From positions 58,156,001 through 58,220,000 of the forward strand of contig NC_135656.1 in NCBI RefSeq assembly GCF_964188315.1: a stretch of 64,000 nt of DNA, given 5' to 3'. Below are positions 5,451-60,760 of the stretch, one piece after another (position 1 is the stretch's first letter; each line of letters opens with the position of its first letter). A program made the position numbers and the translations under genes. The notes below the pieces were generated by a model. That model saw only the letters and a list, made by a program, of their open reading frames with translations, was not told where the DNA came from and ran no database searches. The DNA comes from Podarcis muralis. Its lineage: Eukaryota.

Positions 5451-8400
5451 GGCTTTAAAAGGTGCCATGGTACTTTTGACCGTCTTTTTGCTGCAAGCTA
5501 GCATGATTGCTGGTCTGGATTTTTTTAAAAGCTGAACTGTCACTTGCAATATTTCTCATATTCATGCTGCTCCACTCCACTGGGAAAGCTGTTTGTGGAT
5601 AATCTATTATGCCAGAGAGGCCATTCAGCCTCCCTCCGCCTCCACCTCCACCCCCCAGCCCTCCCAAAGGAACAGCTGGAGCTGAAGTCAATTGAGTAGA
5701 ACCAAGAAGCCAGTGGAGTACAATTTGTTTCTGGGTCTCAGCTAGGGTCCAGTTCCTGTCTCTGGGGAGCAATTATCCTTAAAACTATGGCTGCGAGCCA
5801 GTTAAAGAACATTGGCTTTAAGAGGGCTTTTAATTGATTAATCAGCAAATGAATTAAATATAAATAAATATGCCAATTTCCGAAACCTCCGTCTAGGTGC
5901 CTTTCTGAGGATACTGAAGAAAATACATTGTCCATCTATTTGTGCCCAGTCTGAACTCATGTCAGATTCTAGATTTCCCTTATCAAGTTTTCCTGCTCTC
6001 TTTTAAAAAGCCCTGGAGAAAGTTGTCCTAGGAAGAACACACTGAATTCCGTATCTGCCACCCCTCTCCCAAGCATGATGTCTTTGAGGTTCCATGCAAT
6101 AAGACATGTAAGCTGTTTTTGTCCTTGCATAAATCCCTTCCTGCAGACTGCTGCTTTGGGCGGGCATCCGATCTCTCTCCTCTTGATGATCTCCAAAATT
6201 TCAAACCCTCACTTCCTTTCTCTGCAGAGAATTACCTACCCTTGACCATACTCTTGTTGTGATCAAGCCCTGGCTATGGCGGCTGGTCTGCTTTGTCCAA
6301 TGCTAACGCTTTTAACAAAAAACACACCAAAAACACCCTCCTTACAGATCATAAAAAGTGGGACTGGGCAAGTAGGTTTAAGGTAAACACAGAGCCAACC
6401 ACCCCCTACATCCTTCGCCTTTCAATGGATGCAGCATCTGCCTTTGCGTTTAATATTCAGAATTTACAGCTTTGCTGCTGGAGAGCAAAAGGAGGCTGGT
6501 TGCTCCTGGGGTTTGATGTAAAAAACGGCGAAAGAGGAGGGGGGAGGGACCTGATGCAGATTTGTGGAAAGTGCATCTTTGGGAAATGCTTTGAGTTCCC
6601 TTTCATAAAAATCCAGGGCTCAGAGAACAGGAAAAGACACCCAACTCATAACCTGAAGCAGGACACAGCCGGATCTGGTTTAGCGTCCTGTTAAGAGACG
6701 GCAGATCTAATGGGGAGGTATGTCTTCCACGTGGTTTCTGCTACAGGTTAAAATATCTTCCCCTCCCTTGGTGGAAAATATCGGCCTCCGGAACTGCCTG
6801 TGTTACTGGTGGGTTGTGTGGTCTTTGTACAGGTCCTGGCTAAGGAGAGTCAGGGAAAGAAGCAGATGTGAGACGACATCACGTCCACCTGGCCTCTTAG
6901 AAAGTGAGCTCTTCCTTCTAACAGAAACCAGTTTTCCTTAAGTAAGGTCCTCCCAAAAAGTGGAATGGTTGGTGTGTCATTCAAGGGGGCCTTTCAGACT
7001 CAGGCACCTACTTCAAAATTATGCATGTAGCTGATGCTCATCAGTGTCTGAGTTTAGGGGCAACAAACTCGAATGCTACATTGAGAACAGGAAGGCAAAT
7101 TGTGAGGGGAAAAGGACCAGGGAGGAGGAAGGATCCGGTGTAAATATAAAAGAGGAAACGAAGAAAGGCGACACACTCAAAACCTGTAATTCATTTTTCA
7201 GAAGGTGCTTCCAGACAGGAATTTCCTGAAAATGAGGCTAATAGTTTTAATGATGGCTTCTAGACGTTTGCAAATTAAGGGTGGATTGGCAAAACTGAGT
7301 TTTAAGGCTGCTTCTAAATATATGTGTGTTATCTACAGAAGGCTGAAGGAGAAGAATTGCAATGAATGGGAATGAATTCCCCGAAATTTTTCCACACCAA
7401 ATGTTCAGCTTGCCCACACGTCTATTTATTGATTTATCTACCTCTTACTTGCCAAAGTGGCTTCTAAGCTGTTTACAAGTATAAGCGCAATCACAAAATT
7501 TACTTGGGAGGAAACCTGATTTTTCTGGCTGCCCCTGAAAGGTTAAAAGCGGCATCTGCAAGCGACGTTTTTATTGGTTTGTTTTGTCCAGGTCTCAGTG
7601 ATTTACGAAGGCCAAAGTGGGATTTCCGAAAACGGCCTTTCTTTTAGATTTGGACAGAAGTAAGGACCGGGCGATTCCAGCCGAATGAAGTCCTAAAAAC
7701 GGGGCTAGTTCCTAGCGTTTGAGGCTGCAGTCTTACATCTCGCTTAGGGGGAAATTGAACCCGTGGGGAGGGACACCCCTTGGCAAGAATATAGGAAGGT
7801 GTCCCTTGCCTTCCAGTGATCCTCAGGTGATCCACTTCGGTGGATCGCGCCAAAACTAGACTAAACGCATCCCTGGAAAAATGCAGCATATTCCCCGTTC
7901 TTGCTCATGCTTTGTTTCAGACACATTGACCTCAGGGATACTTCCTCTCGAGTCACTGAGCCTCGGGGTTGCTGCTTAAATTTCCTACACTGCAAAAACG
8001 ACCCATAGCCCCCCCCCCTTTTTTTTTGCTTGTCACAAGAAGGGCTGCCATTTCGTGCGCAGTTCCCGGGGATTAAGCCGGGATTCACTTTTGAGGAGAC
8101 AGAGCTTGCCTAATTGCATTTTCTGAAATAAATATCAAACCTCTGCGGATTTCCCCGTTCTAATAGCCCGATCCCTAAGCCGGTTAAGTGCCCGTTTATT
8201 TATTTATTTGAAAATAAATTAGCGGGGCTTCCTTTGCAAGTGCCACTTGGGGACAGACTATCAGCCTAACAGGGCGATTTAAGCAGCCTGAGGAGGAGGT
8301 GGCTGAGATCCCATGCAGGCGTGACTTGAGAGTCACACTGGACTTGGTGTGATTTACCCCCGAGTAAAAGTGCATCGGATCCGGCTTCACCGCGGTTTCA

Positions 8401-15449: not shown

Positions 15450-15599
15450 NNNNNNNNNNNNNNNNNNNNNNNNNNNNNNNNNNNNNNNNNNNNNNNNNNN
15501 NNNNNNNNNNNNNNNNNNNNNNNNNNNNNNNNNNNNNNNNNNNNNNNNNNNNNNNNNNNNNNNNNNNNNNNNNNNNNNNNNNNNNNNNNNNNNNNNNNN
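15450..15599. other. Assembly gap (150 N), in Pitx1 intron 1
   Basis: Run of N. Confidence 1.
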
Positions 15600-17623: not shown

Positions 17624-18620
<997 letters not shown>

Positions 18621-26714: not shown

Positions 26715-29700
26715 TATCTGGATGAAACAAGTCTGTGGCATACTGTTTTTGAAGCCATGTGGATCTGTTAGGGGACAGAGCAGGTAAGACGTGGAGAACC
26801 AGTGGCCCTCTGGATGTTGGTCTCCAGTTCCCATAAGCCCCAGCCAGCATGACCAATGGTTAAATATGATAGAAGTTGCAGTCCAACAACTTTGGGAGGG
26901 CACCAGGTTCCACACTCCCAAGGACTCAATGAAAGACAACTTCAGCTATGGGGTGGGGAGCCATGCCAGTGGAATAGATTTCCTGGCATAGAGAGATAAC
27001 AGAATCAAGATAACATAGAGAAAAATGTAAATCTCTAGGGCATTTTAAATCTTCACAGGAAAGAACTGAGGACTTTGAAATTACAATATGCCACAACATG
27101 TGCAGCAGCATAGTGCAGTGGTTAGAGTGCCAGACTCTGGGGTTCAAATCCCCACTTGGCCACGAAGCTCACCGGTTGACCTAGGGCCAGTTACTGTACT
27201 GTACCTCGCAGGGTTGTTGTGGGGATTAAATGAAGAGGGGGCTCCAACATACACCACATTGAGCTCTTTAGAGGAAAGGTGGAATATAAATGCAATGAAT
27301 AAATAAATAATGAAATAAATAAACAGTGGAAGAGGCAAGTCTTCCTAGGAACATAGGAAGTCGCCTTTCATCAAGTCAGTCCATTGGTCCATCTAGCTTA
27401 GCACTGTCTATGCTGACGGGAGGTGCTCTCCAGGGTTTCAGATGGGATTCTTTTCTCAGCCATACCTGGAGATGCTGGGGACTGAAGTTCTGCATGCAAA
27501 GCACCTGCTCTGCTGCTGAGCTCCATCCCTTCCCCTTCCTGTAAGCTTCCTACAATTATTTCACCATCATCATTTTATTATTTATACCCCGCCCATCTTC
27601 CTGGGTTTCCCCAGCCACTCTGGGTGGCTTACTGAAAGGCTGACAGTCCTCATGGAATCAGAACTTTTGTCTGCCTAAGGTCACTTCTTTTTACCATATC
27701 TGTTAATAGGACTGATATGCCGTCCCTTATCACATGGGAACCTCAGGGCAGGTCACAACATTTTTAAATACAACAGCCTGTGTCAGAGAGAAAATAAAAT
27801 ACAATTAAAATCAGAATCGCCAGTCCCTGTATTAAGTATTACAATCAGTAGTTACAGGGACCGAGTGGACGCCTTGATTTAATAGGGCCTAGTCAGTAGC
27901 CAAAGCAGCCACCAAAGAGGAACTTTCAGAAGCTAAGAGAGAATTCTTTGAAACCACGACCTCCTGTGCCAAAGATGCAACAGCTCAGGGTCTTCTGGCA
28001 TAATTGCCTTTAAGTGTTGACACTCCTGCAGCCAATCTAAAACCAGCTTCAAAATCATAGCCTGTCCCAAGAGGCCTGGAGAATTGCAGTCTTGTAAAGT
28101 GGCTGGTCCCACCAGAACAAGTACAGCCCCCAAAGTCCACTGCAGGGCCATCTCTTTGAATGCAAAGTTCTGCAGGATGTTTGAAGGCCAAGAGGAAGAT
28201 CCATAGACTTCTAACTATCTTGTTCTCTTCCTCCCTGACCCATTTTGCAGCCTGACCCTTTGATACGAAACTCTTTGCTCCTTTCGAAATAGCATCTGCT
28301 TAACACCTCAGCCCTCCTTGGGGGGGGGAGGGAGACATTTATTTGGAACACTACTGATTCTATGCAACGTTGCTTACTCTCAAGGAGCGATGCTCACGAT
28401 CGAGTGTGGCTGCCTGATTTTCCTGGCCAGGAAAACGTTCTCATGGACTAAGGGGGTTTGTTTCCAAAAGAAGCAACCCCTCATCCCCAATTATCAGTTT
28501 CTTTTCACTGAAGGGAATTGGATGCGTGAGCTACAAGGCCTGGTGGTGTCTGAAAACCCCCAACTGCAAGCAAATGATGGGTGCAGATGCATATTTGGGG
28601 ACGTGGGAAGAGGGCTGCCTTGATGTGGGCCCGCCCCACACAGACGACCATAGGCACAGATCAGCTGTAACGGGGGCAATGGGATTGAATCTCCGAGTGC
28701 GTAAAAGTGATATTTTTAATTGGGGCGTTTAGTCGTCCCCCCGTCTGCTCTTTTAGAGGGGTCCAGGGCTCTGAATGAACCCTTCGACCCCTTAAAAGAG
28801 TGGCACCCAGCGCTGGGCTCTGCCAAGTGGCTGGTGCGACTCTGCAACCCAAAGGGTCCCCGGCCGGTGCTCGGCGCTCGCTCTCCCCTCCTGGCGCCTT
28901 TCAAATAGATCCGTGTCGGCCTGTCATCTTTTCCGAGAGCGGAGGGGCATCCGGAGGCGCCGGTTGGTGCCAGCGGAGCTCCTGCTTCCCTCCTCTTTGA
29001 GCTGTCAAAACTTACACCCGCCTTTTCCATTGCAGAGAGAGAGAGGAGAGAGAGACCCACCCGTGGCTTTCAACGAAATCTCCCAGCGGAGCCTCCGGGG
29101 TTTGTGGCTTGGAGAGATCTTCCAAGCCAAACAACCAAACAACCGCCGTCGGTTGGTTAGCAGCCTTAGCCGAGTGGAAAAACTACCGAGGCAGCCTGCG
29201 ATTGTCACCGCGGTCGATCTCAACCCGTCTCGCCTCTCTCGCCAGCCAAGAGCAGTTTGGTGCGGCGGAGCTGGGAACCAGGAGGTGGCGGGTTCGAATC
29301 TCACCAAGCGACTCTTGTTATCTCTAGCCAATAGGGAAAATGGAGATATTGGCCCACCTTACAGGGTTGTTGTCGTAAAAGGCGGCGCACGTTATTAAAA
29401 ACATGACCGCCGATCCCAAATGTGTCTGCCTTGCTTTGGAGGCCGCCCGTAGCTTTCGATGGGGCTTGCGAGGAAGCGCGCTTAAACGTCCTGCCTTTGT
29501 TTCACACGCATTCCTAAGCATATTTGGGAAGAAATTCCCATTGGTTTCCTCGGGATTTCTCTTCCAGGTCAGCATGAATAGGATTACAGGATTTCCTCAA
29601 GTGACAGTCTCTTTTACGAATTTGTAAACCCACTAGAAGGAAATTTGTTGCAGCCAACCAGTGCTAGTCCTGCTAGACTATGGATGAGCACCACTAATTT

Positions 29701-35394: not shown

Positions 35395-38300
35395 ACCTAA
35401 TCTGAAAAAACCTCTTTTAAATTATTCTCCTATTGCACTCATAATCTTAAAATATGGGACACGACTCGCTTGTGAGTCCTTTCCCCCCCCCCAAGAGAGT
35501 ATTAGACAGGCCCCTAACAGACCACTCTTGTGCATGTTGACTTCGAAGTAAGCCCATTTTCTTAGGACTTCACTGTGCGTCTATCCTGATCTCAGGGTCA
35601 AAGAACCGTAGAGTTGGAAGGAACCCAAGTGTCATCTAGTCCAACCCCCTCCAATGCAGGAAGGATATACCTTGTAAGAAAGGAATCGACGTAGCTGTGT
35701 CCCTTTCTTGGTCTTCCTCATTTTTTGTCCATTTACATATAACCGCTCTCTCATCTATAACTGGGGGGGGGGGGGGCTATTCTAAGCTCCGCATCAGTAG
35801 TACTGTATTCTGTTTTGGGGGGAATACTTTCTGCTTCTGCATTATTATTTTTAATTTGAGAGTTACATAAATTAGTATAAAACAGCACACTGCTGGCTTG
35901 AGGTTAAATGGTTGTACCCTCCTCGACTTTGAAACCTATCAATAGCGCAATCCTAGGTCTGTTTATGGAGAAGTAAGTCTCACCCAATTCAACGGCGCTC
36001 ACTCCGAGGTAAATGTGCATGGGATCAATTCACTTTGTACACAAGGAATTCGGATTAACTGGTTTGTCAGCTCAGAGCACTGGAACCCAAATAATGAAAC
36101 CAGGAGGGAGGTGGAAAACATTCAATGGTGTGCACACTAACGGCGTGGGATGGGACGCGACTGGTACGTGTTGAACTCACAAAAAGCAGACAAAAGCTAA
36201 TATCAGTCAATTATTAAAGCCTTAAATCGCCAACGAAGACCTCCGCGTGGTTTAAATGCAGTTCCTCGCTCAAATGCAAAGCACACAGTCCCAGGGGAGG
36301 GTGAGCGCCAGCCACGTCTCACCGAAGCCCGAAAGGCAGGAAACTAACCGCACGGATTGCCACGAGAATCTCCATTGCGCGCACTGAAACTTAATCTGTC
36401 CCGCGTGTGGGGGGGGAGAAGTTCGCATCCCGCGCCACCAAACCCAGGAGACAAAGACACTTATGCGAGCACCGCGACAGCTCCAGACGCCCATTATCTG
36501 CGGATCATTATTTGCCTGCATTTCCCGGCCAAGGAGCGCTCCATAAGGAGATCAGCGAAGTCGGTCCAAATCTTGCGCCCTTTTAAATCTGGAAGTCCGT
36601 CCCCGTGGGAGGGTGAAGCGGGACTTCATTCCCAGCTAGCTTTGGAGAGGACTGCAGAGCCACGCCAACCAAGGGGCAGCTCTCCGATCCCCGACCTCAT
36701 ACGTGCTGCGAGGTATAACTGATCCTCGAAAACCAGTTCCACGGGGACTTACTGTATTTCCAAACCATTTGTTTAGGTCGCTTCAGGGCGCGAGTCCCAC
36801 GAAAGCCAACTGAACCAATGCCCAACGCCTTTATTGGGGGAAATAAATGCATTTAATGATGGGGACGTAGATATAGGCTGAAATCGAAGCTTAGGGAAGG
36901 GGGACCCTTGCGGCGGAGCGGCGGCTCTTAGGATTTGCAAGCAGCCTGCTTCTTCTTAAAGCCGCGAGTCCCTGCGCGCCTCCCCGAGGCTAACGGAGTC
37001 CCAGGGGCGCGGCTCCTCCAGGCCTCTTTCTCCCACTTGCCCAAAGCGTTATAGAAGCGTGATGGCGCCGCGTTGCCGTCGGATCTGCCCGCTCAGCTGC
37101 CTCTGCCCTCCACCAACAGCCCTGGGCCTGCAGCCCCGCCACTCCGTCTCTGCGGTGGTGGTGTGCTTGTGGTGACCGGGAGGATGCCACGGGGCGGGAA
37201 TCACACCGGCCCCGTCCTTGGAAGCGGACCCGTGGCCTTTGGGCCCCGCAGGCGGATCCTTCGCCGGCTGGTCTGTCCTAGCCAGGGCGGAGAAGGAGCA
37301 GAAGGCGCCTGCCCCGCTCCAGGTGCCCCTAGCGTCCACCACCGTGGCAGCCATCCAGAGCGAGGCTGGTTTTATAGAGCCTTTTATTTTACACGGGACA
37401 ATAAAACAGCTCCCTGAGCCGTTTGCCAACATAAAAACACCCCCGACGACGGAGGTGCCAATGCAAAGCGGAGGGCAACGCGCTTTGGGCTTGGGAAGCG
37501 ATCGCAGCAAGAAGGGAAAGGGGGAGCATTCAAGAAGAAGGAGGCACTTTTTTTGGGGGGGGTTCAGGACCCCAGAAACAGTCTCTCCCTCTCTCCGTGG
37601 GCACTTGACATGGCTAGACGACGTTTACGCACTTAAGCGCGAGGCTGCTTTTTATTAAGGGTGTGTTGGGAGAACAAGCAGGCTGGTAGGTTTTCCTCGC
37701 GCATGGCGGCCCTCAGGACTGGAGGTCAACTTCTGGCCCTTTACACAAACCACTGCCAGGTCAGCACCGGCGCCCAAGCAGCGTCAGCGCTTGGAGAGGC
37801 GTCCCAGAGGTCCGAGGACCAACCCAGGCATGCGGGGGTCGCCCAGGAGGAGGAAATGGAAAGTTACAGGGGCTACAACAATAAGCCACAGGCCCTCCTC
37901 CCTCCAAGCACTGGGGGACTTCCCCCTCTCTTGGGGGTGCACAAGAAGAGAAAAACGAATCTCCTCGCTGATCAAAGCGTATCCTGACACGTACAGCCCA
38001 ACAAGCAACATCCCCTCCGCTGTGTGGAGTTCAGCAACTCCCTCACAACTACCACCACTGCGTTATTGCAATCCATGAAAGGTGGGGGGCTGTGCATGAC
38101 CCCCCACCTTCTGGCTTTGCCTTGCTATTTGATTCGCAGTCATCCTTGTCTTCGGGCAAAATCCCTCCTTTAGCCCCATGACGGGATCCCACTCCCCTCC
38201 TTTAAAAAAAAAATATGCAAGGGGGACATACAACCACACAAAAGAATTTGCTCGGGAGCTTGGTCTGCAAAACTTGCCTCTGGGCGATCTATTTATTCAA

Positions 38301-40277
38301 GTGACATTCCATCTTTAAGCTTCAGAAGTGGATAAATTCAAGCTAGAAAACCCAGATTAGTTAAATAAATGGGCGAGGACCACCTACTTTCTCTGTCTCA
38401 CCCCCCACCCTCTCTCTTCAGACGTGGCAAATGCACTCTTTCGCCAGCACTGGGACCTAGTGTGGGAGCACCATATCAGCGATCTAGCTGCACGGATTTG
38501 AGAGAGAGTGTGCGTGTGTGTGGACTCGTGTGGAGCTCTGACTGTAATAGGATGAGGCATCGCGCGCTGCGCAGATGCAACGTCTTTAATATATTACTGT
38601 CCAAACAGATGATGGGACTTTAATAATAAGGCAGCGGCCCTGAACTAAACGTTGGGAGAGCTGACAAAAACGCGGGCTAAAAAACAGAAAGCTTAATTTT
38701 CCCTGACAGATACAAATGACACCCCAAGGCTTTTTCGAAGAGCAGCAACTGGCTGCCGGAACCGCCGCTGATCTCTCCCGCTCCCCTCCACCCGCCGCTT
38801 GAGCATGCTTCCCAAAGCTGGGAAGATAGAAAAGCCCTTCCCTCCCCCTCTCCCCTCCCTCTACAGCAAAGCGAGCTGGGTTTCCGCTTGGCACCGGGAC
38901 AGCCGGCCTGCTTGCCTGCCTAAGGCGCGCCCGGGTGACTGCAGGGCCCCCAGGCCGCCAGAGCGCAATGGCTGAGCCTCTCTCGGGGGGCCTCCGCCTC
39001 TTGTTAGGATGCTGAGGCTCTCTTGCGTCCTGATCCTGGACGTTTCCAGGAGGAAGAGAAAAGGAGATGTTTGCAAAGCGCGTGAGGGAAGAGGTATCAG
39101 ATAATAAGAGCGGGCAGAGCATCTGCTTTGCATGCAGTCCCGGGTTCAAGTCCCGCCATCGCCAGGCAAGGGCTGCGAAAGGCCCCTGTCTGAGCCGCTG
39201 CCGGGCCAGCCACGGGGAACCTCTGGCCCTCCAGATGTTGATGGGTCCAGACAGCCAGGGGGAGGGTGACAGCTGTACTCCTGCGACATCTGGAGGTTCC
39301 ACCGGTTTCCTCATCCTTGGTGTAGACAATAGTGGTCTGTCTTGCTATTCGTTTAAAAGGAAAGAGGTCCCACAGTTCCAGTTTCTCCTAAAAGAAGCAG
39401 CCCTTGGGGCTGAAATACACGAGTGACAGCCTGGCACTTCAGTTTCGGGACAATTACATTGAATCCCATTTTGGACACCGTGAGGCTGAAGGCACGTAGC
39501 AGGGACCCCGCCCGACTCAGTGGCTTCTGAGTCGACGCGCTCCGAATCCCGGCTCTAGGTCGCACTTCGAGGCGACCACTCACTCCTTGGCTGGCCTGGG
39601 ACTTTATTGCTGCAAAATCGAGATGTTGCGTTGCAGTAGAACGCGCTGCATTCCGACTTCGGCTGCAGCCCGGTCCTGTGCATGTTGAAGACACGGAATA
39701 GGATTCGCTTTCCAGGGGGAAAGAAAACGCCTGTTAGGCTGCGCTGGGCACTTACACCAGAGCAGATCTATTGATCTTAGGCGGGCCCCGGAGTCCACGA
39801 GCTGCGGGTTGCTGTCTTCTTTAATAGCTCTGACTATCTTCGGAGCAGGAGAGAAGGGGAGTTTCGGAAGCGTCCGGAGGGGCAGGATAAGGAACTATAA
39901 TATCGTTCCTTAGCTCGCCCCCTCTGGGAACATGCTTTTCAGATTAATTGATGGAGGAAAAGGGCAGGGGAGTTTGTTAACCAGGCTGCTCATATTACTC
40001 AGGGCATCTCTTCATCTGAACTTGGTGCGCTTTTTTCCTTCTTCTTCTTCTTCTTTAGGGGGGAATTAAAAAATATGCCTCTGATCCAGTGTAATCAAAA
40101 GCGCAGGAACCACTAGCCTCTCTCATTCGTTAGGGAGCCTTCCCAAGCTGAAAAGAAGCTGCAATCGGAGCCACTCGGGATTGTGTTTCCAACATGTATT
40201 TCCACCCCCCCTCCTTGTCCTTGTTTCATTCAAGCAAGCCTCTTAATTGCTGGCAGTATTTTGCTTGGTGAGGGAGG

Positions 40278-41468: not shown

Positions 41469-41514
41469 CTAAATCCACATAGGGAGGGATACTCTTGGGC
41501 AGACCCAGTTCCAT
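41469..41514 (-). CDS. PITX1: Putative alternative first coding micro-exon of Pitx1 (PITX2a-like; exon 41522-41469)
   Basis: TTGTTGTCTACACAG|ATTGTATT-ATG GAA CTG GGT CTG CCC AAG AGT ATC CCT CCC TAT GTG GAT TTA G|GTAAGA, giving MELGLPKSIPPYVDL+1 nt (46 nt, phase 1). Strong Kozak (A at -3, G at +4). In frame with exon 12384. Confidence 0.72.
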
Positions 41515-44485
41515 AATACAATCTGTGTAGACAACAAAACACACCGTAAATGAATCGCATGGGGATGCTCGTATGTGTGTGTATCTATGCATGCATGTTG
41601 GAAGGGTGAAACAGATAGATTTATACCAAAACCACGATTGTTATTTTTTAATGGAAAAATCCACATCCAATATTTCAGCTGAATGCCTTTTCTTAAGGGC
41701 CTATACCCAAGCCACCTCTTGCAAATAGGGGACACTTAGGTCCCGCTGATTTCACTGTTTAGGCACGTGCTTAGCTCACTTTAATGGAAATCAATGGAGG
41801 AATTAGGTTTGGCGGATCACGCCTGGGATTTATTGGGAAGTCGGCTCTACTGTCCCAAGGTATGTTAAGATAGCTCCCCTCCAAACAGAAAATCAAATGG
41901 CAGCGGCAAGTGTTTGACAGTCACTCTTGGAAAGCTGTATTTTAGCAAAAAGCTGCTTTCCCGCACACTGGATAGGGAGATTTTATAAAGCGAGCGGCTG
42001 CAGTCCTATTCCCCACTTATTCTGTGTTCCTCTGAGCACGGTGCGATTTACTTCCGAGTAAACATACAGAGTCGGGTTGCATTGGCGCAATCTAGAGCCA
42101 AGAGTGGATTTCCTACTAACTTGGACAGGATGCCAACCCCACATTCAAAACTACAGAAGCTGAATATCCCGTTTTTCCTTTTCTCCCCAGGGCTCCTCGT
42201 ACCTGATCGAGGTTTTCCGAATGGGGCGGGGTGTTGGGGGCAACGGGAGTACGAAAACACAAGATTAGGAAACTATGGGAATTTGCAGCTGGGCGCTTTC
42301 TTATCTTAGCAAGCAGTTAAATTTTTAAAAAGCCAAATAAAAGAACATTTCACCCGTCCACATAGTACTGTATTATCCAGACTGGAACTATTAAACAGAA
42401 GTAGTTTGCCACTCAATCTTAATATGTTTACTCATAAGTAAGTTCCATGGGATATATCTCCCAGGGTATGTTTAGGACTATATCTCAGGAGAGAGAGAGA
42501 GTGTGTGTGTAATTAAAATGAAAACCACACAACCAACACCTATCTATTCCCGGCTCCCCTCACTGTAATAGTAACAAGAATTTCCAGGGTGGATAACATG
42601 CAAAGAAACTAAAGATATTAGTCTAACCTCAAATTAGACAGGAACAGATTTAGAACCTTGACACAGATGTGTGTACACACATATACAGAAGTGTACACCA
42701 GGTAGCTTCTCTCTCTCTTATGGTGCTACTGCCTTATTCACAACAAAGGCAACAACTGTTGACAAATGCTTGGCTGATTGTTTTATTTATTTTTATTTTA
42801 CTCTACAATCCATTTTAAACCCCAGTGTTGTTTGGATTTAAAATGATTATGGGACTGGCACCCAGATTTTGATTTATTTTTTAAAAAAGTAATCAGCCTT
42901 GATAGAAATAGAACTTACTTCCAAGTAAAACTTAAGTCCTGAACAAACATACTTAGATGTCAGTTCTGTTTAAATAATGTAGCCTCTTCTATGTTTTAAT
43001 ACCAGGGTTTACTACGGAAACTTACATAAACTCAAGTAGTCTGCCTTAAGCTGTGCAAGGAGTGCAAAGAAAGCCAAGGAACTAATTTCTAGTAAGAGGA
43101 ACTAAGGATTATATTCAGCGTTTAACTAGGGCAGCAATTACTGTACATGGACGGGAAATGAACGTACATGCTTCATTATCAATAACACAAATCTCATTTA
43201 GGATTTAAGTCAGGACAGTTTTGATCGTGTATATATTTTTATTTAAATGGATATTTCCAGTTTAATAAAATAGCTTCCATTTAGGTTTTGAATGTGGAGA
43301 GTTTGATTTCCTATTTATTTTATTAAACCGTTTGTTTGCAGTTTAATAACTAGAACCAACAGTTATTTCGGTTTATGTAAAAAAAAAAAAAAGACATCGT
43401 CTTTGTAAGGCATCGGGTTTCCTACTTGATTTCTCTTTGGAGTAATGCATTCTTAGTTTTATTTGTTCTTCCTAAAGTCCTCCTAGACTTTTGGCAAATT
43501 ATTCGAGTTCTGGCGGATAAATCAGCGCTCTGAAAAAATCATTTGGACCTTAAGCTCTTGTCACATGACCTCTAGAAAAATACACCTGTGAAATATTAGG
43601 TTAGCCTTTTCAACTGCATATATATATTATAATAATACTTCAGGATCAAGTAGCTGCAGCTATAAAAAGAAAATCGAATTCCATAAAAATATAACATTTA
43701 TTAGCGACGTTCCGACGTGTTTCTTGTCATGCTGATCCACAACGCGCAGGAGACGAAATTGTCCCCTGCAGCCTTGACACTAGACAGCCCCGAGAACTGT
43801 CTCCCCTTGGCAAGAAGTTCTGGTTTGATTTCCATCTTTGCAGTATGCAAAATGAGGTAACCCCCTTGGAATTATTTTTTCGGGTATATTTGTCAGATTT
43901 GACGAAGCGCAGGAGCCCTCGAGAATTTATACAAGGTATAAAGAAGTCAAGGACTTGCAACTTCAAGGCTAAGCCCAGGCTGCAATTAGGAAAGCCGCGG
44001 GGACGGCGGCGACTTCGACGGGGAAAAAGGCCGAGGCAGCCAAGGAGAGAGAGGGCGGGGCCTGGCCGGGGTTGCCCGGCGAGCGACAGGATCCCTCCAG
44101 GCTGACAAAACCCGACGGGCGATCGGTCAAGGCGACTCCGCCGGACGGATCGTTCTGCGGGCCAGCTGATAACCTCGCTTTTTCATTCGCAAGAGAAATC
44201 CCCTTGGATGTGGGGTTAGGAACTCCAGATTCCGCCCCCCGCCCCCTTTCCAGATTTAAGCACTGCCCTCTAGAGTGGTGGTGGAGGAGAACCAAGGGGG
44301 TATATAAACAACGTGGGGTTTGGGGCGGGGGCAAAGGGGAAGCCTTCCCCGAGTCTCCCAAAACGATTGAGAGAAGGCTTCGAGCTCCCCTTGGACTACA
44401 ACAGACTCCGAGACCAGGAGCTCTGTGGAATCCGCAAACCGGCGACACCGGCCCGCCCCCGCGACCCGAGTAGCGAGGCGCTTAC

Positions 44486-45125
44486 CCTTGCTGGCGCCCC
44501 GGTCTTCTGGAGCGCCTCGTATGTTATCCCAGCAGAGAACGGGCTGCTAAAATTAGGATAGCAGCGGCGGGGGCGGCGGCCTCCTCCTCCTCCTCCTCAG
44601 CGCGCTCTAAGCGTCCTGCCAGGGTCCATGTCGACTCCGCTCTCCAAGCCTTTCGTGGGAAGCCGTCGGAGGGAGGCCCTTCCTTCCTTCCCTTCAGGGC
44701 GCTCCGGCCCAGCAGCAGCAGCCCTCCGCCTCCCGCCCCTCGCCTGCTCTGGTCCCCGGGCCCAGCAGGGAGCTGTGAGCAGCCGGCGCCGGGGGGTTGG
44801 CAGGTTTTCTCCCGGCGATCCCGCCGGCTCCTTCTGACGTCAGTCACCCAGGGTCCCACCACCAGCACACACGGTCGAGGAGTGGGGGAGGGGGGGAGAG
44901 AGAGACCCCTCCAGCCGAGAGCTGAGCCTTCCGCCGTGTATGCGTACCTTGCCCCGCGCCCTCGGTTTCTCTCTCGGACCCCGGCTCCCGCTTCCTGCAG
45001 TGCCGGCGGCCTCGAAGAACGTGATCCTTCCAATCCACCCCCCTCTTCCCGAAGGGGATCACCCTTTCCGGTGCGTGTCTGCCCTAGCAGAGGGCTGGTG
45101 CCAGTTGCCGAGGAGGCAGGAGGCG
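44486..45125 (-). other. Putative non-coding leader exon of a distal Pitx1 transcript (5' end approximate)
   Basis: Consensus donor CAAGG|GTAAGC at 44486/44485 at the edge of a CpG island. Minus-strand TATATAAAG at 45157-45149 places a TSS near 45125. Confidence 0.5.
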
Positions 45126-45440
45126 GCAACGGAGAAAATTCCCCCTGCCTTTATATATATACATATATATATATGGAGAGAGCGAAAGCTAGGAGATCCT
45201 GGAAAGAGGAGGGTAGGTTTGTTGGCCCACCTTTGGTTGGGGACCCTGCCTCGCCACGCTTTGGCAGAGAAGACATTCTTCTTGCAAAGGCGACCTCCTT
45301 TATCGCTTGTTATTCGGCCCCCCTCCTCCAGCAAGTCTCCTTGATCCCCCCTCGCCTATTCCCCTTTCCCCAATCAGGAGCAAAACGCGGAGGCCCCGAG
45401 CGGCCCTGATGAGGCACAGGGCCTACAAATTGGCTGCCTT
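44830..45440 (-). promoter_or_regulatory. Distal CpG-island promoter candidate
   Basis: Very high GC and CpG content. TATA box 45157-45150 (minus), CCAAT 45370-45374, ATTGG 45429-45433, palindromic CRE TGACGTCA 44835-44842. Confidence 0.55.
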
Positions 45441-48405
45441 CGTTTCCTTCTCTCAAATTGCCCCCTTCCACCCCTTGCAGCCCCCACCCCCAGCCGCCTG
45501 CTCGTTCCTTGCTCGCCACTGCCAGCGACAGACAACATTAACATTTCCTTTTTCCTTTTTCTTTCCTTGCCTTCTAGGGGATGATTATTATGGAGACCCT
45601 CACCCTGGCAGTGGATAACAAGGTCTTTGCCTGGGGATTTACAGGAGCAGGACTCCCTTCTCTTGCTAGGCCTAATCCTCCAGTTTCTCAAGTTAGCAAG
45701 GCCTTTTATTAAATCGCTGAATAACAGGATACAGCAACACACAGCCGAAGAAAGGACTAATAGGCCGGCGGGGGTCGGCGTGGTGGATTGGTGGGGGTTC
45801 GTAATAAGTGTTGCTAGCTTGCTGTTTCCTTATTGAAGCAAGAGCGAGCAAGCTCTCGATCATCCCATTGTGGCCAAGGCAGCAATCCTAAACTCTTTGC
45901 TAGGGAGGATGACCCATCGCACACATTAGAGCTTCCTTCTGCACAGGCTTGGCCCAACCTCCCCTATTTCCTGGGTTGAAGGGGACAGTGGTGAAGAAAA
46001 CTATAGCTTGTTTCCCTTTTCCTTTATGGAGGCAGCTTAGGAATGATGGTAAAGTTGGCAGGGGGTTGGTGGGGGGAGCTTAGCCTGCCTTGACAAAATG
46101 GCTTTAAGCCTAAGAGTCTTCCACTCCCCCCTTTTGGAGCTGATGATACAAAGAACCACCAGATTCTAGGTTTTGTACATAAATCACATATCCTGGTCTC
46201 GTGAGATTTAAGGCAAGGCAACTTCGGTCAAGGCAAGACTGACCCTCCTGAATTGGGGGATGCAGAGGAGCTAGGGGCCTGTTTGGAAAACAGGGTGGTG
46301 TGTGTGGGGGGCAGTGGTTTAGAAAAGTTGCAGTTGAGAACCTGGATTCAACACAAATCTGATTCTTAAGAACAGGTGTGCACAATGCAGTTTTTGAGCC
46401 AAACCATTTTAAGTGCAGATGATGATGATGATGATTTTCCTGCCTTTCACCTTAGAATCAAAGCACATAGTTCATAATACAGTTCATAATATACACTACA
46501 GTCTTCAAGATACTTGCTAGGAAGTAGTGCCATTGAACTCTGCAAGATGAATTTAGGATAAGGTTACCAGATTTTTTTCAGTGAATTTGGGGACACTTTT
46601 CAACTTCAATGGATTTTGTATGGGGACTGATTTGTAAATCCAGGAACTGCCCTCGGGAAACGGGGACGTCTGGTAAGCTTAATTTAGGACTTGGCGTATA
46701 CGTGTTTAGGACTATGGGTGGACTAGTTTCCTTCACTAGCTACTTAATTAAAAATGGATTTAAAACAATTACACCCTTATCCCCAAATTTGTTGTGTCAA
46801 CCATGATGCCTGCATTCCTCCAGAAAGCCATGGCAGCAGAAATGTTTAGAAAATGAGGTAACCAGCAAGCAACATACTCCAGTCTAATTAATGCACAAAG
46901 GGGTTAATGCCATAGAGTATGCACTCCCACCAGGCATAGCTATGTCACTTCCCCTCACCTTGGGAGGAAATAGGTAATCATTCCTATTGCCCCTAGTCTA
47001 CCTGAGAAACTCACTGTGTGAGGAGGTTTGAACTGGTTGCTGCAGCTCAACTGCTTGGCTCTTACCAGCCACTCTTGAGTTCCTATACCAATAATCTAGG
47101 AATTTTTACCACTTTGTAACTAAGCTAAGTTTTACTGCCTGTGCAAGTTTTCTGACTGATGTATGGAAAAGTACACGAACCAGATATTTGAAGAGTTTGT
47201 AAATAAACCAATTTTTAACTTACCAAACGTGTGGTCTTTTCCTATGCTGCTGGAAGGGAACTTACGGTACTTGAAAGGACATAGTTTAAAGGTCTAACAG
47301 CCGATATTTCCACACTTTACTTGCTGCATATTTTGTAACTTTAAATCTCTGCTGGGGTTCTCACAAAGCAGTACTTTTCCCAAACTTGGATTTTGGCATC
47401 TAGGAATTCTCTCATTCCCTGCTCCCCCCCCAACAGCATAGAATTTGTAGTGGTCTATGTGGACTAATTGCAAACTAAAATACCTGTATTTAAGAACCCT
47501 GAATCCATTATGTGGAGACAGGCTCTAGTGACATAACTGGATTTATTTCCACGCAAGCTTCAGGAGAATCGAGCGTTAGTGCTGTTACTTCTATTCTTCT
47601 TTGCCCTCTGTTCAACAAAATATGGATTTAAAGTCAGACTTGTTGAAATTAGTGGGGCTGCCATGCTAGGTGCAGTCTATCCAGTCTTCACTGAAATTGG
47701 AAAAACTGGACTATACTAAACATTGGAGTATGGGCCCATTTAAAGAAGTAGGAGTTAGTGCACATCATAGGCACAATCCAACACAGAGTTAGGTACACAT
47801 AAACCCATTGAAATCAATTAGTTAAGCAGGCCTAAGCTTAATTAGGATGAAGGCCTAGTTTAATTTACTTCTAAAAAACAGAAGGCTGCAATCTTCTGTT
47901 CACTTACCTGTGAGTAAACATCATTGATGTCAATGGGACTTGCTTTTGAGTTGATATGTCTAGGATTGTACAGTAAGACTGCTATAATATGCATATTTAC
48001 TTGGGAGTAAGTCCCATTGAAGACATGCACGAGTTACTTCCAAGTAAATATGATTGGATTAAGCCTGTATGTGTAACTGGGCTTCTTACTTATTTTAATA
48101 TAGTAAGATAGGGCTTTTATCTGAAATAAGTAATACTGTACATTAACTCAATAGTAATTCCGAGAAAGAGGTGGTAGAGAGATACTATGATACAAGAGAG
48201 GCAGACCCCATCTGTACTACACAGTGGCATCATAACACTAAACAGTCATGGCTTCCCCCAAAGACTCCATGGAATTGTAGTTTGTTGAGAGTGTTGAGCT
48301 TTGTTAAGAGACCCCTATTCACCCCCCACCCAAGCTACAGTTTCCAGAGTGGTTTTAACAATCCCTATTCCCAGGGAGCTCTGGTCTCTGAAATAATCTG
48401 TATGC

Positions 48406-48644: not shown

Positions 48645-50171
48645 TATCTTAATGACTGCATCTTTCCATCAGGTCTAGACATTAGAGCTTGCAAGAGAGC
48701 TGCTTCCAAATAAGAGAACTGCACCTTTAGAGTGGCAGAGATTTCTAAGGAAGATTTTGGAGAGATTTATAGTGCACGGTCTGGGGCATATTTAGTGTAA
48801 AGCTAAGGGTACACATTTGGGGAAAGTAGTAGAGCACAAGCTGTGCATGTAAGAAGTCCCAGAGTCAATCCTTGTTGTCTCCTGACAGGGCTGAGGAAGA
48901 CTCCCATCTGAAATAATAGCCACTGCCAATCAGTGTGGACAGTACTAAGCTAGATGGACCAATGGTGTGACTTGATATAAGGCAACTTCCTATGTCCCTC
49001 AGCTTCATGCTGTCTTATAATTCTGCATTTTGATTGTGGAATACAGCTCCAGTGAAACACAATCTCAGAACTGGGTCTGGATCTGACAGTTACGCAAGAT
49101 ACGTTATGGAATTCAGAGGGTAAATAAACCAAGGCCTAGCTAAGCTGGGAGTCCTGTTATGATGCAATCACTGGGCAGTGCTTTCCTATGGAGAATATGA
49201 GCAGGACTTCTGGAAAATTCCTTACAGTGCAGCCGCAGCAAGGGGAAAATTGGCCAGGTTCCAATTCTGGACAGCTTTAAAATACCGTTGTATAACTAAG
49301 GAGAGCAGAATGAGTACATTCTCCATTCCAGGTGTACAGAATTGATGGGTTAGGAAAAAGATGGCTGCTCCTTGGAGCCTGTTTATCCAGAAGAAGAAGA
49401 GTATGATCCAGAAATAATGGGCGTAACAAGTTGTGCCCTTTATTTATTAATTTAATATTGGTAACAGTCTCCAAGACTGTAGAAGCAGTACACAGTACTC
49501 AAATTTGCCACTTCTTCTTCCTTCCAGCCAGGATGTTGCATTTACTGAAAGGATTCGGTTCATATTCACAAATTTGCATATAGTTTGTTTATGCTGTTTC
49601 TTATATGTAGCGGCCTCTGGGAAATTAAGAAGAAGGGTGGCTAGGATTTCATCAGCCACCTAGAAGCAAATGTTTTAAACAAAGTTGTTTTTTTTAAAAA
49701 GGAAGGGCAGGAGATTCGAAAGCAGAAAGGACACAGGGCTTGGACACCCATGACCACTTTCTAAGAATGTCCCTGCTTCCTTCCTTCTCAAGCACCCAGT
49801 GCTGCCAGGGCACTTAATATCCCAAGGAGGGAGTAAGTTTTTCAGTTTGCATGTAAGAAAGGGCATCTTTTGGAGTTTCTCAAGCACATCACGGAGGTCC
49901 ATGAGAAAACCTCACCTGAGCTTCCCTCTTGTTCTGCATATAAAGCAAAATGAGAGTATTCAATATGGAAAGGATCATAAAGATAAATAGCATTAAATGA
50001 GGAACAGTCCAACTGCACACTCACCGTTTGTTCAACAGGGAAAGAGTAAATGGAATTCACATGCCAGGCATTAGCCGATTCTTAGATGGTATGATAATAT
50101 TAATGTTAATATTTTATGGGTTGCTTGAGCTTTTGAAAGGCACTAGAAGGGTGGGGTTAATATGGGATGGC

Positions 50172-50173
50172 TG

Positions 50174-50220
<47 letters not shown>
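50172..50220. repeat. (GC)4(AC)20 alternating purine-pyrimidine tract
   Basis: Direct reading. Confidence 0.95.
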
Positions 50221-50222
<2 letters not shown>

Positions 50223-51916
50223 TGTGAGACATTTTGGCACAAGAGCCTACCCAATACAACAAGGTGATATGAAGGTCATAAAAACTCATTGGGGAGCTCA
50301 TAAATTAATGCATTTTACTGGTTTAATGCAGGCAACTAATAATGTGTTTCCTGTTTGGCTGGGAGTCCCCATTGCACTGTGGCAGCTGTTTTAAAGGGGA
50401 TGTGAAATTAAAGAGAGCAAAAGGCGATTGTCCCTAAATCAGTGCTTAATAGAGTGTTATTAGGAAGTCTTCTTTTATTCCCCCCCCTTCTTTAAACTCC
50501 CCTCAAACGGATCATACACAGACATCCTCCAAATGGAAAAGGAGAAGGGGGCATTTCCTGGCGTGGGTTGCATTCCCAGGAATGTGGTGAGAATGAAAAG
50601 CCACCAGGAGAGAAACACCCCAGAAAGATAGGCAGAAAACAATAATTACAGTCTATGTACCCACCTCTTCTCCTTCACTCTTTACTTAGACTGAGATGAT
50701 TGTTGAGACATCCAAGTGAGGTCTGTGGTCTAGCTCAGTTCCCCTTCATCCCTGCTAAGATGTCAGTTGTAAGTACACTTCAGAGGAAGTTCCACTGTTG
50801 CAAAATTCTAGGTATATTCAGAGCCAACTCACACCTGTATTTCAGAGTTTGTATAGGTGATGCGGGGTGTATGGGGTGTTAGGGGAGGGGTGATTTAGGT
50901 ACTTCCCCTGAATGCCAAGACAGGCTCTGGCGGATTGAGAAGGTGGTTTCTGCACATGCTGTAGAGGGAACTGAGGGGCAGATGGGGCTTGTCAACCTGG
51001 GAAGGTAGCTTATCTAGGAGAAGGAAAACTCTGATCCTAACCCTCCTCTGCCTTGTGGGACATCTTCAGGAGAAGAAAAGGCTAAGGAGTAAACCCTACA
51101 CCAGTGGTTTTCAACCAGTGTACCATGGCACTCTGGGGTGCCTTGAATGAGGTGCTGTGGGCAACACTGGCCTTCTTTCCTTCCCTCCCTCCTCTGATGC
51201 CCTCTCACGTCTCTGATTCCCAAAGGCTTGCACAGCTGTTTATTGCAGCAGCCCTGGCTATAAGCTCCACAGGTGTATAGTGCCTCTAGGAGGTATCTCT
51301 CTTGAGTGGGGGGCAGTTCAAAGACCAGGGATGGCAGCATTAGCTGCTCAGAGGACTCCCAAGGTGAGGGGAGAGGAGAGGAGGCTGAGGGAATACTTCA
51401 CAAGGGAAGGTGTTGGAAAAAAGGTGAGAGGCTGTCAGCTTTGCAGGCAAGGGGTGACATAACTGCACTCTTGAGTCCCACAGGGGTGCCGCAGAGATAA
51501 TGTAGTTGGTCAAGGGACTCAAAAAGGTTGAAAAGCTCTGCCCTACACAAATCCGGAGTGGACTCCCTAAGGCGGTTGGATGGCACCTTGTATGCCTCCT
51601 TCCGGCAACTCCTGTAGCCAAGCTGGTGCCAACGTATTGCTCTGCTTTCCTTTGGACCACATCAGCGAGGCTGGGGGTGTGTGTGTGTCGTGTCATCTGG
51701 GCAGCCCAGGACCTCCATACACACTGCCCAGGCTTGTGTCTTGCAGAGGTCACTTCAGTGCTGTTAATGCAGCTGTTTGACTTCACCCCTGGAGGCATAC
51801 TCCATTGTCTCTTGAGACAGGTGGATGCCAACCAGTAGGTGATGCAGGTGGAACTGTACTGCCCTGCTGCCTGTGGGGAGACATTTGTGTGAAATTTAGC
51901 AAAGTCTACCATTCCA

Positions 51917-60535: not shown

Positions 60536-60760
60536 NNNNNNNNNNNNNNNNNNNNNNNNNNNNNNNNNNNNNNNNNNNNNNNNNNNNNNNNNNNNNNNNN
60601 NNNNNNNNNNNNNNNNNNNNNNNNNNNNNNNNNNNNNNNNNNNNNNNNNNNNNNNNNNNNNNNNNNNNNNNNNNNNNNNNNNNNNNNNNNNNNNNNNNNN
60701 NNNNNNNNNNNNNNNNNNNNNNNNNNNNNNNNNNNNNNNNNNNNNNNNNNNNNNNNNNNN
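60536..60760. other. Assembly gap (225 N)
   Basis: Run of N. Confidence 1.

Follow-up and report, generated by a model that had tools for sequence, protein, structure and literature searches.

We report that a CpG island upstream of Pitx1 in the wall lizard Podarcis muralis, at 43.8-45.4 kb of the 64,000-nucleotide window that we analyzed (NC_135656.1, positions 58,156,001 to 58,220,000), is probably a distal, P1-like promoter of this gene together with its non-coding first exon. Judged by comparison of genomic sequences and by a public gene model, the leader exon is real and conserved, and the island around it is a probable Pitx1 promoter. Pitx1 acts in the limb and the pituitary and serves as a textbook example in studies of hindlimb identity and pelvic loss; the DNA upstream of it is commonly taken to contain enhancers only. 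In the model that we favor, minus-strand transcription would begin somewhere between about 45125 and 44780, and the leader would end at 44486 and, after removal of a 2.96-kb intron, be joined to the acceptor of the a-type micro-exon at 41522. The micro-exon would provide the start codon (41514) and then join the c-type exon at its internal acceptor (17781), giving the 311-residue isoform that is already present in public wall lizard models.

Pitx1 occupies the minus strand of the window, and its exon translations match the P. muralis protein XP_028573916.2 (isoform X1), from which they differ only where residues were read from an intron. About 27 kb separate the distal island from the c-type exon. 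The RefSeq isoforms of P. muralis Pitx1 comprise 311 and 294 residues. Isoforms of 294 residues are found in RefSeq for several squamates and start at a Met just inside the c-type exon, suggesting that some other 5' exon is joined to the internal acceptor, perhaps the 44486 leader directly. For comparison we retrieved, via their a-type proteins, the orthologous loci of P. lilfordi, P. raffonei, Lacerta agilis, Hemicordylus, Crotalus, Eublepharis and Heteronotia, which together with the window form an eight-squamate alignment. The window DNA is about 95% identical to that of P. lilfordi and P. raffonei, and the leader region is collinear among the compared squamate loci. Runs of N are present in the window at 15450-15599 and 60536-60760.

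Table. Positions in the 64-kb window of the Pitx1 exons, the proposed distal promoter and leader, and associated elements
Feature	Position	Strand	Remarks
Conserved upstream block, candidate proximal regulatory region	45314-45766	-	CCAAT 45433, inverted CCAAT 45374, GGATTA bicoid/Pitx-type site
CpG island with putative promoter and leader exon	43801-45400	-	GC 0.61, CpG observed/expected 0.74
CCAAT and inverted CCAAT (ATTGG) boxes	CCAAT start 45433; inverted starts 45374, 45034	-	Read on the minus strand
TATATAAAG, TATA-like motif ending a (TA)n microsatellite	45149-45157	-	Lineage-specific
Predicted non-coding leader exon	44486-45125	-	3' end fixed at 44486; 5' end somewhere from ~45125 to ~44780
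Perfect palindromic CRE (cAMP response element) TGACGTCA	44835-44842	.	Conserved
Motif GAGCAGGCGRGG	44738-44749	-	Near-invariant in eight species, 10/12 columns
Upstream open reading frame, 10 codons + TGA	44597-44629	-	ATG 44629, TGA 44599-44597
Stretch corresponding to the 56-nt GC-AG mini-intron of P. lilfordi	44547-44605	-	In the public model, fuses upstream frame to Pitx1 frame
GT of leader 5' splice site	44484-44485	-	GGTAAG invariant 8/8
a-type micro-exon, 54 nt	41469-41522	-	ATG 41514; receives leader
c-type start exon of Pitx1		-	ATG 17797
Internal acceptor inside c-type exon	AG 17783-17782, first exon base 17781	-	Joined by micro-exon
Homeobox exons of Pitx1	near 12.3 kb and 3.4 kb	-	

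The 3' end of the proposed leader is set by a donor that reads AGG/GTAAGC (the slash marking the exon boundary), with 44486 as the last exon base. Its GGTAAG is the longest invariant run in the eight-squamate alignment, kept in 8/8 species. On the minus strand of the 64-kb window the donor consensus MAG/GTRAG occurs ten times and the exact AGGGTAAG once. A donor-like AAG/GTACGC is also found inside the island at 44948 in lacertids, with a GTGAGT nearby in Hemicordylus; we rejected 44948 as a second donor, since it is not conserved in Crotalus or the geckos.

On the receiving side, the pyrimidine tract, AG acceptor and GTAAG donor of the micro-exon are invariant in 6/6 squamates, and the conservation of this acceptor implies that the micro-exon is internal and requires an exon upstream. 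Proteins of lizards, frogs and fishes begin with the micro-exon and then run into the c-type exon, three a-type proteins (P0134, P0125 and P0001) passing from the micro-exon straight into GMN... at the internal acceptor. In paddlefish, too, an acceptor precedes the ATG of the a-type exon, by 9 nt (L008, 5400-5500), and from these sequences the internal-exon layout appears to be old; DNA similarity to the leader was not found in the paddlefish upstream region.

Both splice sites are used in a public model of P. lilfordi Pitx1, CAI5766653.1 (342 residues), whose first residues are those of the short upstream frame. When this protein is mapped exon by exon on the window, residues 9-28 fall at 44546-44487, residues 29-47 at 41523-41467 and residues 47-90 at 17782-17651, and the model thus uses donor 44486 and acceptor 41522. 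The splice from leader to micro-exon that the earlier note had proposed is therefore supported, the two sites being joined in this model and each being conserved, and the leader exon is already known at the level of annotation. The annotation of P. lilfordi drew its Illumina and Iso-Seq transcripts from five tissues (heart, kidney, liver, lung and tail) and processed them with PASA, TransDecoder and EVM (PMC10214862). Its leader exon presumably has transcripts behind it: the model contains a GC-AG intron that an ab initio predictor would be unlikely to produce, which we counted in favor of a transcript basis. A word search of the protein collection with residues 1-100 of CAI5766653.1 found only genomic c-type fragments and no leader-bearing lacertid transcript contigs. 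We also noted a Paroedura isoform with a long N-terminal extension, whose weak tblastn match in the Heteronotia island (E = 0.43) we do not take as evidence.

CAI5766653.1 shares with our reading of the window the leader donor and the micro-exon acceptor, in orthologous DNA that is 95% identical, but there the leader is coding, whereas here the AUG reads better as that of a conserved short upstream frame. The P. lilfordi locus (6001-6141, corresponding to 44629-44486 of the window) carries the same short frame and stop as the window, and the model reaches the Pitx1 frame only via the removal of 56 nt (6025-6080) with GC and AG ends. We consider it very unlikely that translation of a 342-residue isoform truly begins at the AUG at 44629, with a coding frame restored by a real 59-nt GC-AG intron (44605-44547), even though CAI5766653.1 exists, UniRef gives the same sequence for three Lacertinae and the ends of the mini-intron are found in all four lacertids. 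The donor AGA/GCGCGC matches the GC-AG consensus poorly and the intron is shorter than the vertebrate norm; its acceptor sequence could be aligned only within Lacertidae, whereas the stop of the short frame is kept in 7/8 species; and neither of the RefSeq isoforms of P. muralis has this length. The mini-intron is probably an annotation artefact, arising from reading-frame maximising or repeat alignment, and the public Pitx1 model could be corrected by the 31 N-terminal residues that it adds, which are probably not made. Given this doubtful intron, the sole model showing the splice is not flawless.

The surroundings of the leader have the properties of a promoter of the CpG-island type. We took as such a stretch of at least 500 nt with a GC content of at least 0.55, a CpG observed/expected ratio of at least 0.6 and a kept orthologous position. 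The region tabulated above is such a stretch: an island is found at the orthologous place in five loci, and in the other two (L006 and L007) this stretch shares 93-95% identity with the window. The elements that the earlier note had read from the window alone are all present: the CpG island, which sits at its orthologous position in all seven other squamate loci; the oriented TATATAAAG on the minus strand; one CCAAT box and two inverted ones; the perfect CRE, read as TGACGTCA; the consensus donor, now seen to be invariant; and the sole leader ATG, opening a 10-residue frame in strong context.

In the window alone, these motifs are no more than chance would give (the 64 kb contain TGACGTCA twice, and the TATA pattern five times on the minus strand); they rise above chance because they are conserved across species. 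The CRE is kept in 7/8 squamates, including the gecko Heteronotia, and is degenerate in Eublepharis. The CCAAT boxes are found in both Podarcis, Hemicordylus and Crotalus, with Eublepharis devoid of them. The motif GAGCAGGCGRGG, in which position 5 differs in Eublepharis and position 10 is A or G (invariant alignment columns 512-515, 517-520 and 522-523), may be part of the core promoter or start region. The TATATAAAG motif and its TA repeat are present only in the three Podarcis species and Lacerta agilis, i.e., in Lacertidae, and in the eight-squamate alignment they are absent from Hemicordylus, Crotalus and both geckos. Being confined to Lacertidae and adjoining a TA microsatellite, this TATA motif cannot be the ancestral core promoter, and we read it as a lacertid addition to the putative CpG-island promoter, which has a conserved CRE and conserved CCAAT boxes. 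The CCAAT (~45433 and 45374), TATA (45157) and CRE (44842) motifs imply differing start positions, and GC skew over the region gave no additional signal.

The leader also contains a short upstream open reading frame. The ATG that opens it is flanked by A at -3 and G at +4, and no other ATG occurs from 45125 to 44486. An AUG and an in-frame TGA, 9-10 codons apart, are found at the aligned position in 7/8 squamates, CTG replacing ATG in Eublepharis, and the frame is thus a conserved uORF in the sense of an AUG with an in-frame stop in the leader whose position is kept across species. From the CRE to the donor, the leader of every lineage is free of sense-strand AUGs other than that of the uORF, and between the point 30 nt past the TATA and the CRE there is no sense ATG in any of the eight species. 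Across five lineages, sense-strand ATGs number 4 against 16.35 expected, a count as low being reached in 0/2000 simulations, a P value that is optimistic since the five lineages share ancestry; all four are the conserved uORF AUG, and the antisense strand has 15. In the window leader alone, the depletion is not significant (P = 0.10). The asymmetry between the strands in the five-lineage count fits a leader transcribed from the minus strand.

The distribution of ATGs also bears on where the leader begins. The exon could be real but internal, in which case the true start and promoter would lie further upstream, for example near the block conserved at 50.7-49.9 kb or outside the window, and the island would be merely exonic or regulatory. 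We hold this to be unlikely. The start site in our model is a predicted one, more conserved blocks do lie upstream, and in lacertids a pyrimidine tract is followed by CAG at ~45203; but Hemicordylus, Crotalus and Heteronotia do not share this CAG, conservation at the leader itself extends to the CpG island, the CRE and the CCAAT boxes, and in Hemicordylus and Crotalus sense ATGs return just upstream of the equivalent of 45126, as expected outside a leader.

It is also quite unlikely, in our judgment, that we are dealing with an orphan CpG island, or with a Polycomb-bound regulatory element in the Pitx1 landscape, that gives no productive Pitx1 transcript, the P. lilfordi model being an artefact. 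Such an element would be consistent with the strongly conserved non-coding blocks on both sides, with the presence of several more CpG islands between this one and the c-type exon and with the implausible mini-intron of the public model, but it would leave unexplained an invariant GGTAAG exactly at the donor of that model, a strand-specific depletion of AUGs around a retained short frame, and a conserved micro-exon acceptor that needs a partner. A distal promoter with a spliced leader is the reading that we retain.

If the leader is spliced as in the exon-by-exon model, about 119 nt of the mature RNA would separate the stop of the uORF from the main AUG downstream. This spacing would suit translation of the uORF followed by re-initiation, suggesting that the most likely effect of the uORF is to lower translation from the a-type start codon. 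The frame is reminiscent of the conserved short uORFs of developmental regulator mRNAs in its single AUG in good context, its 9-10 codons, its stop well upstream of the main AUG and its kept position and length; it differs from them in the loose conservation of its peptide, of which most species share the first four residues, and in that one gecko is without the leader AUG. The fold of the leader RNA is no more stable than that of shuffled sequence (z = -0.06). The conserved short frame provides a concrete test case for isoform-specific translation.

The proposed arrangement can be compared with that of PITX2, where a distal promoter and a non-coding exon 1 lead to the ATG-bearing exon 2 of PITX2A and PITX2B, and where PITX2C has a promoter of its own inside the gene, upstream of exon 4 (PMC2330153). 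Lizard Pitx1 would likewise have two promoters, a putative distal one and a proximal one driving the c-type exon, and its distal non-coding exon would likewise be joined to a very short exon, a few kb further down, that carries the start codon. We take this short exon to be like PITX2 exon 2 in length and phase. The PITX2a/b-like layout that the earlier note had recognized holds in part: a short ATG exon with an acceptor is present, as is a non-coding upstream exon with a donor spliced to that acceptor, but the c-type exon is not skipped. PITX2A skips to the homeobox exon, whereas the short exon of lizard Pitx1 joins the internal c-type acceptor, and lizard a-type proteins accordingly include c-type sequence. 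Some fish isoforms do skip the c-type exon (P0108, P0112, P0116 and P0117). The stretch of some 27 kb between the distal promoter and the c-type exon is a further difference from PITX2.

Searches of the literature for a distal promoter or leader of Pitx1 yielded no paper. Relative to existing annotation our additions are modest, consisting of the conserved upstream frame and a likely mis-annotated N-terminal extension, and no new kind of mechanism is involved. More tentatively, promoter, leader and uORF could form an old Pitx1 regulatory module, found across squamates, sharing its exon layout with ray-finned fish, paralogous to the PITX2 P1 unit and exerting isoform-specific translational control; we regard this broader proposal as possible and rather doubtful. 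If it were true, an old module would sit in DNA that mammal-centred work calls purely upstream regulatory, and limbless snakes would have retained it.

A second, distal promoter and leader so far above the usual start exon would alter the reading of the conserved blocks in this region, two of which flank the leader. The upstream one (45314-45766) is 70% identical to Eublepharis over 460 nt, with three-lineage identity of up to 0.78 in 50-column windows. The other, at 43466-44031 on the minus strand, lies in the intron between leader and micro-exon and is non-coding and very strongly conserved, with 78% identity to Eublepharis over 641 nt and, among four lineages, up to 0.84 in 50-column windows. 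Homeobox- and octamer-like motifs abound in this block, which we regard as a candidate Pitx1 enhancer. Upstream of the island, a third block at 49934-50740 shows 62-69% identity over 700-990 nt with the geckos, Hemicordylus and Crotalus. Further CpG islands are found downstream of the distal one, at 28501-29500 and 36201-39900, before the c-type exon is reached.
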